Shown: positions 2,606-38,700 of the stretch, piece after piece
How positions within the stretch are numbered: position 1 is the first letter of the stretch
Layout of the letters: every line of letters starts with the position of its first letter
Assembly (NCBI RefSeq): GCF_963921235.1
Contig: NC_086098.1
Span: 121,272,001 to 121,336,000, forward strand
DNA length: 64,000 nt
Direction of reading: 5' to 3'
Source: Mobula hypostoma
Lineage: Eukaryota
Notes under the pieces: generated by a model
The model's input: only the letters and a program-made list of their open reading frames with translations
What the model was told of the DNA's origin: nothing
Database searches by the model: none
Position numbers and translations under genes: made by a program

Positions 2606-2985
2606 ATGTCGACCGAGGGGAAATTATTTATCGGCGGTGGAATTGGCCGGGTCACTTATTCAAATACGAGCAAATCACGCTGTGTGATATATTAAGAAAT
2701 CAGAGACCGTAACGTCGCGAGTTGTTTTTTTTTGTAAATTTCGACAACCCAAAAGCACTAATTGCAGGCCATAAGCAGCAGGTCTACCGACAACCGTCAG
2801 TCAGATCTGGTGGATCAAACCGAGAGGCGGGGGGGGGGGGGGAGTTGGCAGAAACCGAGGTGGGGTCGTGATTACTGGGAAAATGAAAGGAGCGGCTTTG
2901 GTGGTAGAGGCTAGTACGGCGAGGCGAGGCGAGGTCGAAGGTGATGGCTATTGAATGAGCCACGGCGGTACGAAGAACAATAACT
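2606..2985 (+). pseudogene. Decayed intron-less CIRBP/RBM3-like copy (copy 1)
   Basis: ATG at 2606 reads [11 protein letters not shown] (RNP2). Frameshifted blocks KYEQI, IKKSETVTSR, FVNFDNPKA, LQAISSRSTDNRQ, VDQTER are colinear with the intact copies ([41 protein letters not shown]), followed by a G/R-rich remnant. Deletions, frameshifts and stops; locally CpG-rich. Confidence 0.85.
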
Positions 2986-5104
2986 CAGTCCGATGGAGCC
3001 GTCTTCCTGCCGCCGCTGTGAATTAGTTGATTTGCGTGTTACGTTAAAAATGCTAGAAACCCAGTTTGACCATTGTCATGATTAATTTTGTTAACTGTTG
3101 TTTGTCCTGGGGTCTTCCTTAAATTGAACTTTTGACTTTGAACCTCGCTTATCACATGGTTTTCTGTGATAATTAAAAAATCCGACCCACTAAGCCTCTG
3201 TCATTGGGACAGTGTGTTCGCTATTTTAAATTGCCCTTCTCTTCTTACATGACCTCCTTTTGGAATTGTCAAAATCGTTTTGCTTTCTGGGGAGCTTTTT
3301 CCACAATTTCTTGTAGCGCAATGAAGGCAATCAGGCCGAGAAATATTATAAGTTCCATTTCCTGACAATTTAATAATTGCTCTTCTTAAGATAACTGGTC
3401 CTGGAATATGGATCTTCGAGTTACTTTTGATCGATTGACCGATTTTCTTGATTTAATTGTTTGATCATGAAGATTGAACACTTTTTTAAAAAAAACCCTC
3501 AAAACATTTCGCACACTAACGTTTTCATGAATATGCGGACATGTTACTGGTCCAAATGAAGGTAGTAACATAGAACCTGTAGAAACCATTCATTTGAGCG
3601 GGAAACTTTTTCTGTATGTTGCCCAAAATATACCCAAGTACTAAGTCACTTGTCACTAAAACATACTGAGAAAATCGTAACTCATACAGCTTATCACTAG
3701 CCTCTTGGAAAGTAAACAGATTCTGGTCTGTTATGTTGGAACATTTATTGAACATTGATTTACTGGCATGATCCAAATTGCCACTTGAGAGACCAGGTTT
3801 TTTTTGCCAGTGGATGTTATTGAAATAAAATAGCTTCAGGTATTCTAATGACTTCTTTCTGATAAACCATTCAAATTCACTTGGAAGAGGTAAATCTGAA
3901 GATTATCTTTTCTTGCTAAACATGTCTTCTATCATATTTATTTCCTTTTATGAGTATTTAGTGCTGAAGATTTGAAGGTTATGTTCAACAAAACAATCGA
4001 GATAAAGACATAAGGGAAAAGATTAAATATGAGGACAGAAAAGCCAATAATAAAAAGCAGGATACTAAAAATTATTTTCAATGAAATAAAGAGTAAAAGG
4101 GAGGTGAGGGTTGATATTGGACCACTGGGGACGAAGAAATGACAGATGAACTTAATGGCTACTTTGCATCTTTAATTTCTTCCCCTTTCTGATGTTTGGA
4201 CTGAACAACAACTGAACCTTTTAACCATGTCTGCATGCTTTTTTGCATTGAATTGCTGCCACGTTTTTGGCCAATTGGTTATTTGCATTAACAAAGTGGA
4301 CTCTGAGAACAGAATTATGAATTTCACCTGTTCACGTGGTGCTTTATTTTTCACTAAAAAAAGTTTTATTAGTTGTTGATTGATCTTTTAAACTGTTCCC
4401 TTTATTGACAAGATTGTAACAAATAGTCAGCTTTCTGATAGACACTTCCCTCAACTACTGAGTTCCAGTTGAGAACACCTTGAAATTGCACCTCCAAGCA
4501 GGTGCTGGTTGCTTCTCTATCCATAATTAGCTCTTGTCTCTCAGCTTGGTGAGGCCTTGGGTGCTTGGACCATTTATAGTCTTCATAGCTCTGAAGATTC
4601 GTCATGTCATGGTTAGTGGCTGGTTGCTGGATTTCCTGTGTTTATCCTATCCACTGTCTCAAGGCAGGCAACACCTGTGGGAAGAGAAACAGAGTTAACA
4701 TTCAGGTCAATTACCTTTCATCAAAACTGTTAGCAGTTAGAAAGTTGTAGAGCAATGGAGTGGAGCAGAGAGAACAATGGTGAGGTTTACAGTAGGCCGG
4801 AGACAAAGAAGTTGAACAATAGAGGCGATGATGATATTAGATAAAAGAGGATGGTGAAGGCTGGTGAATATCAAAGGTCATATCTAGAATAGGTATAAGT
4901 AGAAGATGAGTGAAATATGAAATTATGAGTGGTAAGACTGAATGCTGGAAATGTGAGACAAGACTTAAAAAGGATGGGTTATCTGAAATAGTTGAATTCA
5001 GTATTTTGTCCAGAATGTTGTAATGTGCCAAGTTGGATGAGATGTTGTTTATTAAGCTTTTGTTATTTATTGAAAAGACGAGATCAAAAACAGTGGTCAA
5101 GAGT

Positions 5105-7385
5105 GGAATAGAGCAATACAGCGTGGAACCAACCGCTTTAGACCAAGTCATCCATGACAATTAAGATGTCCATCTAAACAAGTCCCATTTGCCGCATTTG
5201 ACCCATATCACTCTAAATAACTCTACACCTTTTCTATCCAAATATGTTCCAAATGTTTTAAGTGTTGTTATTGTACCTGCCCCAACCTCATTTCCTGGTA
5301 GCTCATGCCCTCTGAATGAGGAAGTTTCCCCTCAGATCCTTTTCAAATATTTCCGCTCTCGCTTTAAATCTATGCCATCCAGTTTTGGTTTTCATTCCCT
5401 TGGGAAAAAGCTGATGTACATTTAATTTAGCCTTGCCCCTCATAATTTTATACATCTTGATAAGGTCACCCCTTATCTCCTGTGCTTCAAGGAATAAATT
5501 CTTATCATGCCTAACCTTTTTCTTAGACCATCAAGTCCTGACAACATCCATGGTAAATCCCTCCACTCTTTCCAGCTTAATTTTGGTTTTTATATAATAG
5601 GGTAATCAAAACTGTACACAGTACCCCAGTTGTTTCCTCATCAATATCTTGTACATCTGCAACATAACATCCCAATTTCTATGTCCATTGCCCTGACTGA
5701 TGAAGGTAAGCATACCAAACATATACTTCACCACCCTGTTTATCTGTGATACCACTTGTACTTGGACTCCTAGGTCCTTCTGTTCTGTAACACTCCCCAG
5801 TGAATGTCCTACCCTTATTTGTCTTCCCAAAATGAAACACATTGCACTTATCTGAATTGATTGCCTTTGCTTGACCCACTTATCTAGCTGATTAAAATCC
5901 TCCCGTATTTTTAGTCACTACCTTCACTGTTTGCAATACTACATATTTTAGTGTCATCTGCAGATTTACCAACTGTGCCTTACATTTTCACATTAAAGAG
6001 GTTTCTATAAATGATGAACAGAAATGGGTCCACCACTAATCCAAGTGGAACACCACTTATCACAGCATTCCATTCAACCTCTGCCACTGAGACTATTAAG
6101 TATCTGCTCCTTGCACATCTGGAGAAGAAGGATGCTTATGTGAGAATGCTCTTCTTGGACTACAGTTCAGCATTCCACACCATAATTCCCTCCAGGCTCA
6201 ACAAGAAGCTCGGAGACCTCAGCCTTCACCCTGCCTTGTGTAGCTGGATCCTGGATCTCCTGTCAGATTGCCAGCAGATGATAAGAGTGGGCTCCCTCAC
6301 TTCTGCCCCTCAGACCCTCAACACTGGAGCCCCCCCCCGTTTTGTGTCCTAAACCCTCTCTTTTACTCTCTGTATACCCATGATTGTGTCACCACCCACA
6401 GCTCCAATCTGCTAATTAAATTTGCTGACAACATTACACTGATTGGCCTAATCGCAAATAATAATGAGGCAGCTGACAGAGAAGGAGTCAAGAAAACAAC
6501 CTCTCCCTCAATGGCACAAAAACAAAGGAGCTGGTTGTGAACTACAGGAGGAATGGAGACAGGCTAGCTCCTATTGACATCAATGGATCTGGGGTTGAGA
6601 AGGTGAATAGCTTTAAGTTCCTCGGCGTCCATATCACTGAGGATCTTAAGTGGTCTGTACATACCGGCTGTGTGGTGAAAAAGGCACAGCAGCACCTCTT
6701 TCACCTCAGACAGTTGAGGAAGTTTGGTATGGGCCCCCAAATCCTAACAACTTTCTACAGGGGAACACCCTGATTGGCTGCATCACTGCCTGGTATGGGA
6801 ACTGTACTTCCCTCAATCGCAGAACTCTGCAGAGAGTGGTGCAGACAGCTTAGTGCATCTGTAGATGTGAACTTCTCACTGTTTAGGACATTTGCAAAGA
6901 GAGGTGTGTAAAAGGGCCTGAAAGATCATCAGAGACCCGAATCACCCCAACCACAAACTGTTCCAGCTGCTACCATCTGGGAAACGGTACTGCAGCATAA
7001 AAGCCAGGACCAACAGGCTCCGGGACAGCTTCTTCCACCAGGCCATCAGACTGATTAATTCACGCTGATACAATTGTATTTCTATGGTATAATGACTGTT
7101 CTGGTGTATATGCTATTTATAATAAATTGCACATTGCACATTTAGATGGAGATGTAACGTAAAGATTTTACTCCTCGTGTATGAAGGATGTAGGTAATAA
7201 AGTCAATTCAATTCAAGCAGTTATGTATCCACTAGTGCTAGCTCTTCCTGAAATCCATGTGATCTAACATTCCCGGTTAGCCTTCCATGTGGGACCTTGC
7301 CACAGGCCTTGCTGAAGTCCACTTAAACAATGACCATCTTGTTGCCCTCATAAATTCACTTGGTTACTTTTTCAGAAAACCACCT
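5105..7385 (-). mobile_element. Old CR1 LINE 3' fragment, interrupted by a Rex1-like insertion
   Basis: Minus-strand ORFs 5606-5842 and 5679-5879 give CR1 RT C-terminal motifs (KCNVFHFG, DLGVQV, YCVQF). The CR1 sequence resumes at about 7215-7385 after the insert. Confidence 0.7.
6095..7216 (+). mobile_element. Rex1/Babar-like LINE 3' fragment
   Basis: HLEKKDAYVRMLFLDYSSAF, LYTHDCV..KFADN, FKFLGVHITEDLKWS, GCITAWYGNC motifs; ends in AATAAAG followed by (TCAAT)n tail. Confidence 0.8.
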
Positions 7386-37947: not shown

Positions 37948-38475
37948 CTATCTGGTAGAGTACCGATCGTAGTTATTACCACGGGTCCCCCGGGAGTAGC
38001 CGCCGCCCGACTTGGGCTCGTACTGCCGATAACCACCATATCCGCTGCTTCCGCTACCGTAACCACCTCCGCCGTAGCCGCCGCTGCTGTAGCCACTGCC
38101 GCCGCCGTAACCACCGTATCCGCCGCCACCGTAGCCGCCGCCTCCGTAGCCGCCGCTTCCGCTTGTGTAGCTGCCGCCCCGCCGATAGCCGCCGCGTCCT
38201 CCTCCGTAACCGCCGTCTCCCGACTTCTTCTCGGCGTGGTCCACCCGGATCTGGCGGCCGTCCAAGGACTTGCCGTTCATTGCCTGTAAGGCCTCGGAGG
38301 CATCCTCCGGGTTCTCGAAGGTGATGAAGCCGAAGCCGCGGGACGTCATGGTGACCTTGTCCTTGATCACCCGGGTGTCAACGATCTCGCCGTACTTGGA
38401 GAAAACGGCTTCCAGCGCCTGCTCGTCCGTCTCAAAGCTCAGTCCGCCGACGAACAACTTTCGTTCGTCGCCCAT
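37948..38475 (-). CDS. CIRBP: Intron-less cold-inducible RNA-binding protein-like (CIRBP/RBM3 family), copy 3, 175 aa
   Basis: RRM ([30 protein letters not shown]) with 68/86 identity to copy 2 by hand alignment; long GGGYG/SYG-rich tail; intact ORF; Kozak A-3/G+4; minus-strand AATAAA candidates at 36754-36759 and 36027-36032. Confidence 0.92.
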
Positions 38476-38700
38476 ATTGTCGTTTTGGCGGGGCTTCGTC
38501 TGAAGACAACCAACGAGCTCCGCAGCACTGCCGAACGTAAATGCGCACCCACCGGAAGCGGGGCCGTTTATATAGTGGCTCTGTGCACCGCCTTAAAACG
38601 ACTTCTGCGCCGCAACGGCCATGCAGTTAGGTTCCGGTACCCACGTTGTGCAGAGAAATCCTGCACACGTGACCGCTGTTCCGGGGATAATAACTACTTT
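38476..38700 (-). promoter_or_regulatory. TATA-box/CpG promoter of CIRBP-like copy 3
   Basis: Minus-strand TATATAAA at 38567-38574 about 95 bp above the ATG; ETS-type CCGGAAG 38552-38558; CpG-rich. Confidence 0.7.

Follow-up and report, generated by a model that had tools for sequence, protein, structure and literature searches.

In vertebrates the textbook cold-shock proteins are CIRBP and RBM3, whose response to temperature is intron-dependent in mammals, operating through splicing efficiency and poison exons. CIRBP loci include human 19p13.3, mouse Cirbp and Xenopus cirbp; human RBM3 is located at Xp11.23. Intron-less copies of an RRM gene are known from mammals, where RBMXL1 and RBMXL2 (hnRNP G-T) are copies of RBMX. 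Mouse Cirbp contains several introns, of which intron 1 is required for the cold response, and Cirbp cDNA without introns loses most of the temperature response in mouse cells (PMC5066242). The array described here represents an additional branch of the CIRBP/RBM3 family, old and conserved in cartilaginous fishes, and not a recent local invention.

The intron-less array beside GLO1

The window analysed is a 64,000-nucleotide stretch of Mobula hypostoma DNA. It contains two intact intron-free CIRBP/RBM3-like genes (A and B) and one dead copy (C), adjoining GLO1. The original prediction of such a cluster was confirmed, and both intact genes are single open reading frames where it had placed them. 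From left to right the order is pseudogene C (type T3) and gene A (type T2), both pointing right, then gene B (type T1) and GLO1, both pointing left (Table 1). The predicted GLO1 neighbourhood was also recovered: exon peptides of Callorhinchus GLO1 located its last two coding exons by tblastn (E 8e-13 and 5e-15). These exons are 78-81% identical to a Callorhinchus gene which carries PF00903, and a single GLO1 exon by itself reaches the Pfam cut-off (20.7 bits). Gene B is 6.9 kb from GLO1.

Table 1. Positions of array features and GLO1 exons in the M. hypostoma window
Feature	Positions	Strand	Remarks
Copy C, conserved promoter and 5' leader	2304-2637	+	blastn to Pristis T3 upstream region (L005), 69-80% identity
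Copy C, T3-type pseudogene	2606-2932	+	tblastn and DNA alignment; YWENERS tail motif kept
Copy C, 3' UTR	3012-3979	+	76% identity over 1043 columns to Pristis T3 3' UTR; Heptranchias 73-78%
Gene A transcript, unspliced	15636-17213	+	single collinear X19 contig ending in non-templated A run
Gene A core promoter	16141-16170	+	inverted CCAAT 16141-16145, CCAAT 16166-16170, then GC boxes (read from sequence)
Gene A CDS (T2 type)	16286-16699	+	137 aa, uninterrupted ORF; RRM, then RG/GY tail ending RSSYQ
Gene B transcript, unspliced	36739-38518	-	3' UTR about 1.2 kb; longer 5' leaders to 39319
Gene B CDS (T1 type)	37948-38475	-	175 aa, uninterrupted ORF; RRM, then (GYGGG)n tail ending YDRYSTR
Gene B TATA box TATATAAA	38567-38574	-	about 50 nt upstream of main RNA contig 5' end
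GLO1, last two coding exons	45334-45414 and 46019-46114	-	remainder of gene to the right

The predicted A and B proteins (14-18 kDa) have a single N-terminal RRM, matched by Pfam RRM_1 at residues 7-77 in both (E ~2.5e-24), with the motifs RNP2 (KLF[IV]GGL) and RNP1 (RGFGFITF). The RRMs of A and B differ at 18 of 84 aligned residues, while RNP1 and the C-terminal block are identical; this agrees with the divergence noted originally. The Gly/Arg/Tyr-rich tail is different for each type, with RGRG/GY repeats in A and (GYGGG)n in B, and the lengths fit the range of the family (about 130-180 aa). Similarity between A and B is confined to 282 nt of coding sequence. Beyond genes of cartilaginous fishes, all vertebrate matches listed are CIRBP or RBM3 (E 1e-37 to 1e-30). 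By RRM, by tail and length, and by closest relatives, A and B belong to the CIRBP/RBM3 family. They are orthologues of neither canonical CIRBP nor RBM3, as they group apart from both in the tree and are not multi-exon genes. Family membership makes roles as RNA chaperones, mRNA stabilisers or translation enhancers plausible; the proteins would act by binding mRNA, as CIRBP and RBM3 do. The distinct conserved tails suggest a possible division of labour among T1, T2 and T3.

Copy C was expected to be dead, and it is. Its protein match is weak (tblastn E 0.008 to A and 7e-8 to the Pristis T3 protein), and DNA alignment with two orthologues reveals several stops and five frame-breaking indels: -22 at ~2637, -1 at ~2679, +1 at ~2724, -8 at ~2754 and -5 at ~2925. 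Identity across the aligned CDS columns is 64%. C is a copy of neither A nor B and represents a third conserved type, T3. Its CpG-rich character has been retained (CpG observed/expected ~1-1.5 over 2400-3000), and its 3' UTR is as well conserved as those of functional T3 orthologues. The RNA runs contain only 0.05-0.22 of the words sampled from 2450-4000.

Transcription and selection of genes A and B

RNA evidence was drawn from runs of three coded organisms in three studies; these are labelled 'RNA?' and were kept as contigs without conditions. Gene A is further covered by X3 contigs over 15700-16639 and 16831-17189, with no joints within the gene and a flank depth of about zero. Its major 5' end is at ~16244, where a high-depth contig starts, and a longer leader extends to at least 15555-15700. 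The poly(A) site lies at 17189-17213. Gene B is represented by one collinear X19 contig (36831-38518) and by X1 coverage of 37443-39319, and joints are absent in 36739-39319. RNA depth drops steeply at ~38505-38520. An X1 contig starting at 36739 is preceded by a T run, which is the tail of the minus-strand mRNA. The poly(A) tails of A and B are not templated by the genome, and the flanks are silent while the genes are at high contig depth. The collinear contigs, non-templated poly(A) and lack of splice joints together indicate that both genes yield abundant unspliced mRNAs.

A and B are single-exon units, and the two have separate promoters, of the CCAAT/GC-box type in a CpG island for A and with a TATA box for B. 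The island of gene A spans 16000-16800 (CpG observed/expected 0.7-1.09, GC 0.59-0.66). Across the 5' ends of both genes the CpG ratio is ~0.7-1.4, compared with 0.32 for the whole window, and the start contexts of A (ACCACCATGG) and B (GACAATATGG) are both strong; the original prediction was borne out on both points. It had also assigned an AATAAA signal to both genes. This holds for gene B (36754-36759); gene A has ATTAAA instead (17196).

Purifying selection acts on both genes, and conservation across rays and sharks extends to their UTRs. dN/dS is 0.078 for gene A against Amblyraja T2 and 0.18 for gene B against Rhinoraja T1; for T3 it is 0.075 between Pristis and Heptranchias. Compared with the mRNA of a related organism, gene A has three differences, all synonymous. 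Gene B has four synonymous differences from a related organism, one S-to-G change in the tail and one in-frame 3-nt insertion. Intron-less copies of RRM genes are frequently pseudogenes, and the evidence for A and B is from DNA and RNA; they could be imagined as transcribed retro-pseudogenes or non-coding RNAs with open frames that survived by chance. This deserves almost no credence, since dN/dS is 0.08-0.18 between lineages separated for at least 200 million years, both RNP motifs are intact, and the tail types have been kept between orders. Each gene also has a strong start context and its own promoter, and the truly dead copy C displays what decay looks like at the same locus. Chance survival is thus contradicted by the selection data. 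A and B are functional genes, as originally predicted: transcribed, polyadenylated, unspliced and selectively constrained.

Distribution, age and origin

The coding sequence is intron-less (gene span equal to three times the protein length plus three) in 12 of 12 cartilaginous-fish relatives inspected. These represent six species: Amblyraja, Rhinoraja, Pristis, Heptranchias, Scyliorhinus canicula (three chromosomes) and Callorhinchus (three genes). The neighbouring GLO1, SOUL and RPEL genes show long spans in the same tables, so introns are reported there. Three conserved tail types recur across the relatives: T1 (gene B), T2 (gene A) and T3 (dead here). Pristis and Heptranchias have the identical order and orientation, with T3 and T2 pointing towards an opposed T1. 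Some stingray gene models merge T3 with T2. Alignment of the gene A region (15464-17453) with the Pristis T2 locus gives 72% identity, as does that of the gene B region (38620-36567) with the T1 locus of Rhinoraja. The gene B UTR aligns to that of Heptranchias at 68%; entire transcripts including UTRs can be aligned between orders. In Callorhinchus, an intron-less pair lies 5.6 kb from GLO1, a linkage conserved in the M. hypostoma window. The three types have one-to-one counterparts in skates, sawfish and sharks, with conserved order and orientation, and the GLO1-linked pair also has them in the chimaera Callorhinchus; the array is older than the split between chimaeras and sharks/rays.

The original prediction had proposed a lineage-specific array that arose by local birth and death; in the corresponding rival reading, the retrogene is recent and multiplied in this ray. 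Copy C is indeed dead, and for T3 an intact protein (P0187) is recorded from a contig whose size matches that of gene A's contig. C may thus be a decayed extra duplicate, that is, a small local birth-and-death event. However, A and B can be matched one-to-one to orthologues in skates, sawfish and a cow shark, with UTRs, gene order and orientation conserved as well; GLO1-linked relatives occur in a chimaera, and A and B are dissimilar beyond their short shared coding stretch. A lineage-specific origin of these two genes is contradicted by the cross-order orthology and is very improbable.

A canonical-type CIRBP, sought as a separate locus, was found on other chromosomes in cartilaginous fishes (P0127, P0136, P0148, P0156). 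Sizes of the contigs carrying canonical CIRBP and the array are 34.7 and 115.6 Mb in Amblyraja, 32.8 and 89.2 Mb in Rhinoraja, and 10.7 and 99.1 Mb in Callorhinchus. The intron-less genes consequently form an additional, retrogene-like branch of a family that has other members in these fishes. A tree of the RRM separates the canonical genes, including the four cartilaginous-fish CIRBPs, from all intron-less genes (100/98); the cartilaginous-fish CIRBPs group with bony-vertebrate CIRBP/RBM3. T1 forms a clade (100/98), and the AU test does not reject the intron-less genes as monophyletic (p 0.20). As the tree has 86 columns and far outgroups join T1, probably a long-branch artefact, it does not discriminate between CIRBP, RBM3 and their ancestor as parent, nor the timing relative to the bony-vertebrate split.

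The array is probably derived from an ancient retrogene of the CIRBP/RBM3 family, at least as old as the divergence of chimaeras from sharks and rays. Its genes are intron-less copies of a gene with intron-bearing relatives (mouse Cirbp), and they are transcribed and under purifying selection. A CIRBP/RBM3-type mRNA would have given rise to a retrocopy next to GLO1, no later than the common ancestor of chimaeras and sharks/rays, and this copy would then have been tandemly duplicated into T1, T2 and T3. Occasional gene conversion (Scyliorhinus, Callorhinchus), further dispersed copies and, now and then, the decay of a copy (C in this window) may have followed, with canonical CIRBP retained in parallel on another chromosome. 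The 3' ends of A and B have no genomic A run and no visible retroposition scar; none is expected at such an age. An unlikely alternative is that an ancient CIRBP/RBM3 duplicate, for example from the early vertebrate genome duplications, has always resided in the GLO1 region and was lost in bony vertebrates. All its introns would have been lost in place in the cartilaginous-fish stem, e.g. by recombination with its own cDNA, prior to tandem duplication. The position of the intron-less genes outside the entire CIRBP+RBM3 group (100/98), and not nested beside cartilaginous-fish CIRBP, also fits an old paralogue with later intron loss; human 6p21 (GLO1) and 19p13 (CIRBP), which we take to belong to one set of anciently duplicated regions, count in the same direction. 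On the other hand, each inspected copy is free of any coding intron, the usual signature of retroposition, and two protein searches returned no bony-vertebrate member of the clade among their best 120 matches. As for the long stem branch (0.2), a fast new retrogene set against very slow canonical genes accounts for it equally well.

Significance and comparison with known systems

The array was thought to be undescribed, and a literature search found no paper describing the intron-less subfamily; RefSeq models of these genes are automatic. For gene A at least such a model already exists, and the exact protein is present in NCBI/UniRef. Labels such as 'CIRBP B-like' and 'RBM3-like' in sharks and rays conceal a separate subfamily, of which annotators should be aware. 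Kept for hundreds of millions of years beside GLO1, the array is a natural experiment on splicing-free regulation. It also illustrates cleanly how an old retrogene-like family can combine stable orthology with gene conversion and the occasional loss of a gene, and it bears on why ectothermic cartilaginous fishes need extra CIRBP/RBM3-family copies.

The absence of introns makes temperature-sensitive splicing control of the mouse Cirbp kind unusable, so regulation would proceed through promoters, alternative 5' leaders and long conserved 3' UTRs. Tentatively, and with more doubt than confidence, cartilaginous fishes might be seen as having two parallel cold-shock-protein systems: a canonical, intron-containing CIRBP tunable by splicing, and the intron-less three-gene array. 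The array would then be more than 400 million years old, would supply most of the family mRNA and would be regulated without splicing. Under the same tentative scheme, the FUS-like (GYGGG)n tail of T1 might define a distinct functional class, and the fact that the dead T3 copy still has a conserved 3' UTR and a CpG island might reflect a protein-independent function.

Among known systems, RBMXL1 and RBMXL2 would resemble the array, if the latter is a retrogene family, in being intron-less, expressed and selectively kept copies of a multi-exon RRM gene at a new locus, with the parent retained. The fish array differs in being far older, class-wide, a tandem of three types and broadly abundant in the RNA runs; its parent-daughter relation is putative. 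RBM3 has the same architecture and size, and close to its C-terminus it carries a YDRYS-like motif as T1 tails do. Several T2 genes are labelled 'RNA-binding protein 3-like' in RefSeq. However, amniote RBM3 forms its own clade (100/99) inside the canonical group, apart from the intron-less genes. CIRBP shares with the intron-less genes the single N-terminal RRM (identity ~75-80%), the same RNP1 and RNP2, the Gly/Arg/Tyr-rich tail and a similar size; the T3 tail even retains the terminal SYRDYD-like motif of CIRBP/RBM3. The differences lie elsewhere. All intron-less genes have RVDHAEKK where canonical genes have RVDQAGKS, and a second common stretch differs from the canonical EV[VI]V[VI]... A true canonical CIRBP is present separately in cartilaginous fishes. 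Mouse Cirbp has several introns, whereas A and B have none and are adjacent to GLO1; poison-exon or other splicing control is thus impossible for them.

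Gene structure, transcription and selection

Intron-less CIRBP/RBM3-like genes of cartilaginous fishes carry one of three types of C-terminal tail. T1 (gene B) contains KYGE[IV]VD... and (GYGGG)n and ends in YDRYS.R; T2 (gene A) ends in RSSY[N]Q; T3 contains RVGHAEKK and YWD.DRS and ends in RSYRDYD. The original prediction of two intact single-exon genes in the window, each encoding an RRM and a Gly/Tyr/Arg tail, was confirmed by ORF listing, tblastn and Pfam. Both A and B have a canonical RRM (RRM_1, about E 2.5e-24) and continue into a tail rich in Gly, Arg and Tyr. The two RRMs have 66/84 residues in common; DNA similarity is confined to 282 nt of coding sequence, and the flanks share none. 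No further copies beyond A, B and the decayed copy C were found in the window by tblastn. The predicted GLO1 neighbourhood is present as well, with 6.9 kb between the last two GLO1 exons and the gene B start.

Features of the window
Feature	Position	Strand	Remark
CpG island of copy C	2400-3000		observed/expected about 1-1.5
Copy C	2606-2932	+	T3-type, dead
3' UTR of copy C	3012-3979		
LINE-type remnants	9681-11337; 25872-26375; 30518-34368; 57.6-59.1 kb		reverse-transcriptase ORFs
Gene A long leader	15555-16243		some runs
Gene A main 5' end	near 16244		42 nt upstream of ATG
Gene A CDS	16286-16699	+	uninterrupted, 137 aa; ORF listing, tblastn
Gene A poly(A) signal	17196		ATTAAA
CpG island 3' of gene A	17200-17600		GC 0.63-0.73, observed/expected 0.8-1.1
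Gene B poly(A) signal	36754-36759		AATAAA
Gene B CDS	37948-38475	-	uninterrupted, 175 aa; ORF listing, tblastn
Gene B long leader	38519-39319		some runs
Gene B promoter box	38574-38567		TATATAAA
Multi-copy repeat	39320-40340		
Last two GLO1 exons	45334-45414; 46019-46114	-	

Transcription was assessed from runs of contigs labelled 'RNA?', in which contig depth does not give expression level, tissue or condition. That the runs are RNA is shown by their poly(A) tails and by the silence of the gene flanks. The gene A stretch occurs in runs of several coded organisms and studies. Its contigs are limited to 15555-17213, with about zero depth in the flanks, and a sharp step in contig depth marks the main 5' end; longer leaders extend to at least 15555-15700. 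One contig from a related organism is collinear with gene A from 15636 to 17213 and then continues into an A run that is absent from the genome. Contigs of gene B are collinear over 36739-38518, and some extend to 39319. The T run that precedes 36739 is the poly(A) tail of the minus-strand mRNA of gene B. No splice joints were found inside A or B in four runs; the listed joints lie only in flanking repeats.

In some runs both intact genes have long collinear 5' leaders of about 600-850 nt. That of gene A looks sample-dependent, with a contig depth of about 11-16 in run X1 and a join to the CDS contig in run X3. The long leaders, known here from non-quantitative contig data, bring to mind mammalian CIRBP, for which alternative leaders have been reported. 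Promoter features are not alike between the two genes: gene A has CCAAT and GC boxes within a CpG island, and gene B has a TATATAAA box. A motif conserved in the T3 leader, GCCATTTTAAG, was a candidate for a shared promoter element, but neither A nor B has it and its frequency in the window does not exceed chance. A second CpG island lies just 3' of the gene A poly(A) site; it also aligns to the T2 locus of Pristis, and its sole RNA cover is a low-depth contig (17428-17779).

A and B are under purifying selection. Over 85 RRM codons, dN/dS is 0.078 between A and its Amblyraja orthologue (T2), 0.18 between B and its Rhinoraja orthologue (T1), 0.075 between the T3 genes of Pristis and Heptranchias, and 0.30 between A and B. 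Relative to the window, mRNA from a closely related organism carries three changes in the A CDS, all synonymous. In the B CDS there are five, four of them synonymous and one a Ser-to-Gly change in the tail, and also one in-frame 3-nt insertion. The intact genes had been predicted to be functional; selection and their unspliced, polyadenylated mRNAs bear this out.

The multi-copy repeat listed in the table has many joints and an extremely high RNA contig depth. It contains an internal inverted partner (39328-39471 against 40065-40208, 94% identical), recurs in weaker copies near 54.6 kb and 59.4 kb, and probably represents a SINE or another transposon family that is transcribed.

The array in other cartilaginous fishes

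The array had been considered lineage-specific, a view that did not survive comparison with other species. The best protein matches are all from cartilaginous fishes, with several per species on one chromosome. The coding sequence is intron-less in 12/12 relatives from six species, the gene span being three times the protein length plus the stop codon. These relatives (11 looked up and one found as a neighbour) are T2 of Amblyraja, T1 of Rhinoraja, T2 and T3 of Pristis, T1 and T3 of Heptranchias, three Scyliorhinus canicula genes on three chromosomes, and three Callorhinchus genes. The S. canicula genes were judged from gene tables, and T1 of Amblyraja (P0004) has no gene-product record. The span method does detect introns, since GLO1, SOUL-domain and RPEL genes show long spans in the same tables.

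Order and orientation are shared as well. In Pristis, T3 and T2 lie on the same strand, 42 kb apart; in Heptranchias, T3 and T1 lie on opposite strands, 141 kb apart, and T3 is transcribed toward T1, as C is toward B. Both agree with the window, where C and A are followed by B in the opposite orientation. Whole transcripts, including the UTRs, align at 68-76% between the window and its skate, sawfish and cow-shark orthologues, and the surrounding DNA is unaligned. The LINE families of the window spacers are also present in the Pristis and Heptranchias loci; array spacing differs between species because such remnants occupy the spacers. The chimaera Callorhinchus has an intron-less pair separated by 9 kb, and GLO1 follows after a further 5.6 kb; the tails of the pair end in a T1-like YDRYNR motif. 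Another Callorhinchus protein, encoded on the same chromosome, bears the signature of T3 and is placed within its clade (98/82). Given the GLO1-linked chimaera genes and the conserved types and order, the array predates the split between chimaeras and sharks and rays. This split is usually dated to more than 400 million years ago.

The RRMs of Scyliorhinus and Callorhinchus cluster by species in the tree, a pattern which points to gene conversion. The GLO1-linked Callorhinchus genes (777-1178 and 10001-10414 of locus L002) are divergently oriented and encode 133 and 137 residues with nearly identical RRMs (dS 0.01); this points to an inverted duplication of recent date or to gene conversion that is still going on. 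The three S. canicula genes include an intron-less copy (P0037, 131 aa) with a somewhat degenerate RRM, located on another chromosome in an intron of an RPEL-repeat gene. It suggests that catshark array members have dispersed or been retroposed secondarily.

Copy C and the T3 type

One dead copy had been predicted, and alignment of copy C with two orthologues agrees: the copy starts at 2606 and then decays, with five frame-breaking indels and several stops. It best matches T3, and YWENERS is common to C and Pristis T3. C also aligns to T3 loci over its leader and, above all, over its 3' UTR (Pristis 76%, Heptranchias 73-78%). Decay is oddly uneven. C and Pristis T3 are 64% identical over all aligned CDS columns and 67% in the RRM part, whereas the functional pair of Pristis and Heptranchias T3 genes reaches 81% and 83%; in the 3' UTR, the values are 76% and 74%, so that this region, unlike the CDS, has kept the level seen in the functional pair. 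The CpG island of C also persists. These features suggest continued use of the unit itself, or of a promoter that it shares with the SOUL-domain gene found next to T3 in Pristis. RNA runs contain only a 0.05-0.22 share of the C words sampled, and a tblastx search of window positions 1-2600 for the SOUL-domain neighbour gave only transposon matches.

The idea that this ray lost T3 was dropped, as an intact T3-type protein (P0187) is on record for Mobula hypostoma, in the protein cluster of gene A (NCBI/UniRef). The contig that carries its gene equals that of gene A in length (252.4 Mb); the gene is not within the window and probably lies elsewhere on the same chromosome. C may be either the original T3 or a decayed duplicate of it; in a comparison meant to separate the two, C scored equally with the T3 proteins of Mobula, Hypanus and Pristis. 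The same cluster has two stingray RefSeq models that join T3 and T2 (P0186 of Hemitrygon akajei and P0188 of Hypanus sabinus, 376-394 aa). They use a predicted splice from the T3 end to the T2 leader, and the linker maps to the gene A leader at 16009-16299, where its frame is interrupted by a stop in the window. The fusions reflect read-through transcription or else are artefacts of annotation.

Relation to canonical CIRBP, origin and regulation

Canonical CIRBPs separate from the array were recovered. A homologue search with a T3 query found one in each of Callorhinchus (P0127), Amblyraja (P0136), Rhinoraja (P0148) and Chiloscyllium plagiosum (P0156); all four show the signature of bony vertebrates and a tail ending in SYRDSYDS, and they sit on contigs that differ in size from those of the array. 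The search also found another canonical-like type (P0152 of Hypanus, and P0157). The search with the T3 query rules out that cartilaginous fishes have no canonical CIRBP, the retrogene having replaced its parent. In an unrooted tree of 68 RRMs (86 columns), a branch with 100/98 support separates all intron-less genes from the canonical side, which holds bony CIRBP, RBM3, the four cartilaginous-fish CIRBPs and the second canonical-like type. On that side, the canonical CIRBPs of cartilaginous fishes cluster with that of Amia (97/96). The AU test does not reject a monophyletic intron-less group (p 0.20), in which T1 forms a strong clade (100/98, separate tree). Plant and fungal glycine-rich RRM proteins were tried as a root; their attachment to T1 is probably a long-branch artefact, and no root is claimed.

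The array is an ancient, functional, retrogene-like CIRBP/RBM3 subfamily. It would have arisen by retroposition and been amplified in tandem beside GLO1, with the canonical gene retained in parallel. That all copies are without introns is the usual signature of retroposition; no retroposition scar remains at the array genes. The main rival is an old paralogue which lost its introns in place, and this is unlikely. By homology, the proteins may act as RNA chaperones or stabilise mRNA.

In mouse cells, Cirbp needs intron 1 for its temperature response, most of which is lost from an intron-less cDNA (PMC5066242). Because intron-less genes cannot use this route, regulation of the array would have to be splicing-independent. 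The gene-family finding is solid and the regulatory implication is testable; the array is not a new kind of system. It had been put forward as undescribed; the literature search gave no account of intron-less CIRBP genes in sharks or rays, nor of a GLO1-linked class-wide array. Automatic gene models already exist in RefSeq, under the names 'CIRBP B-like' or 'RBM3-like'.
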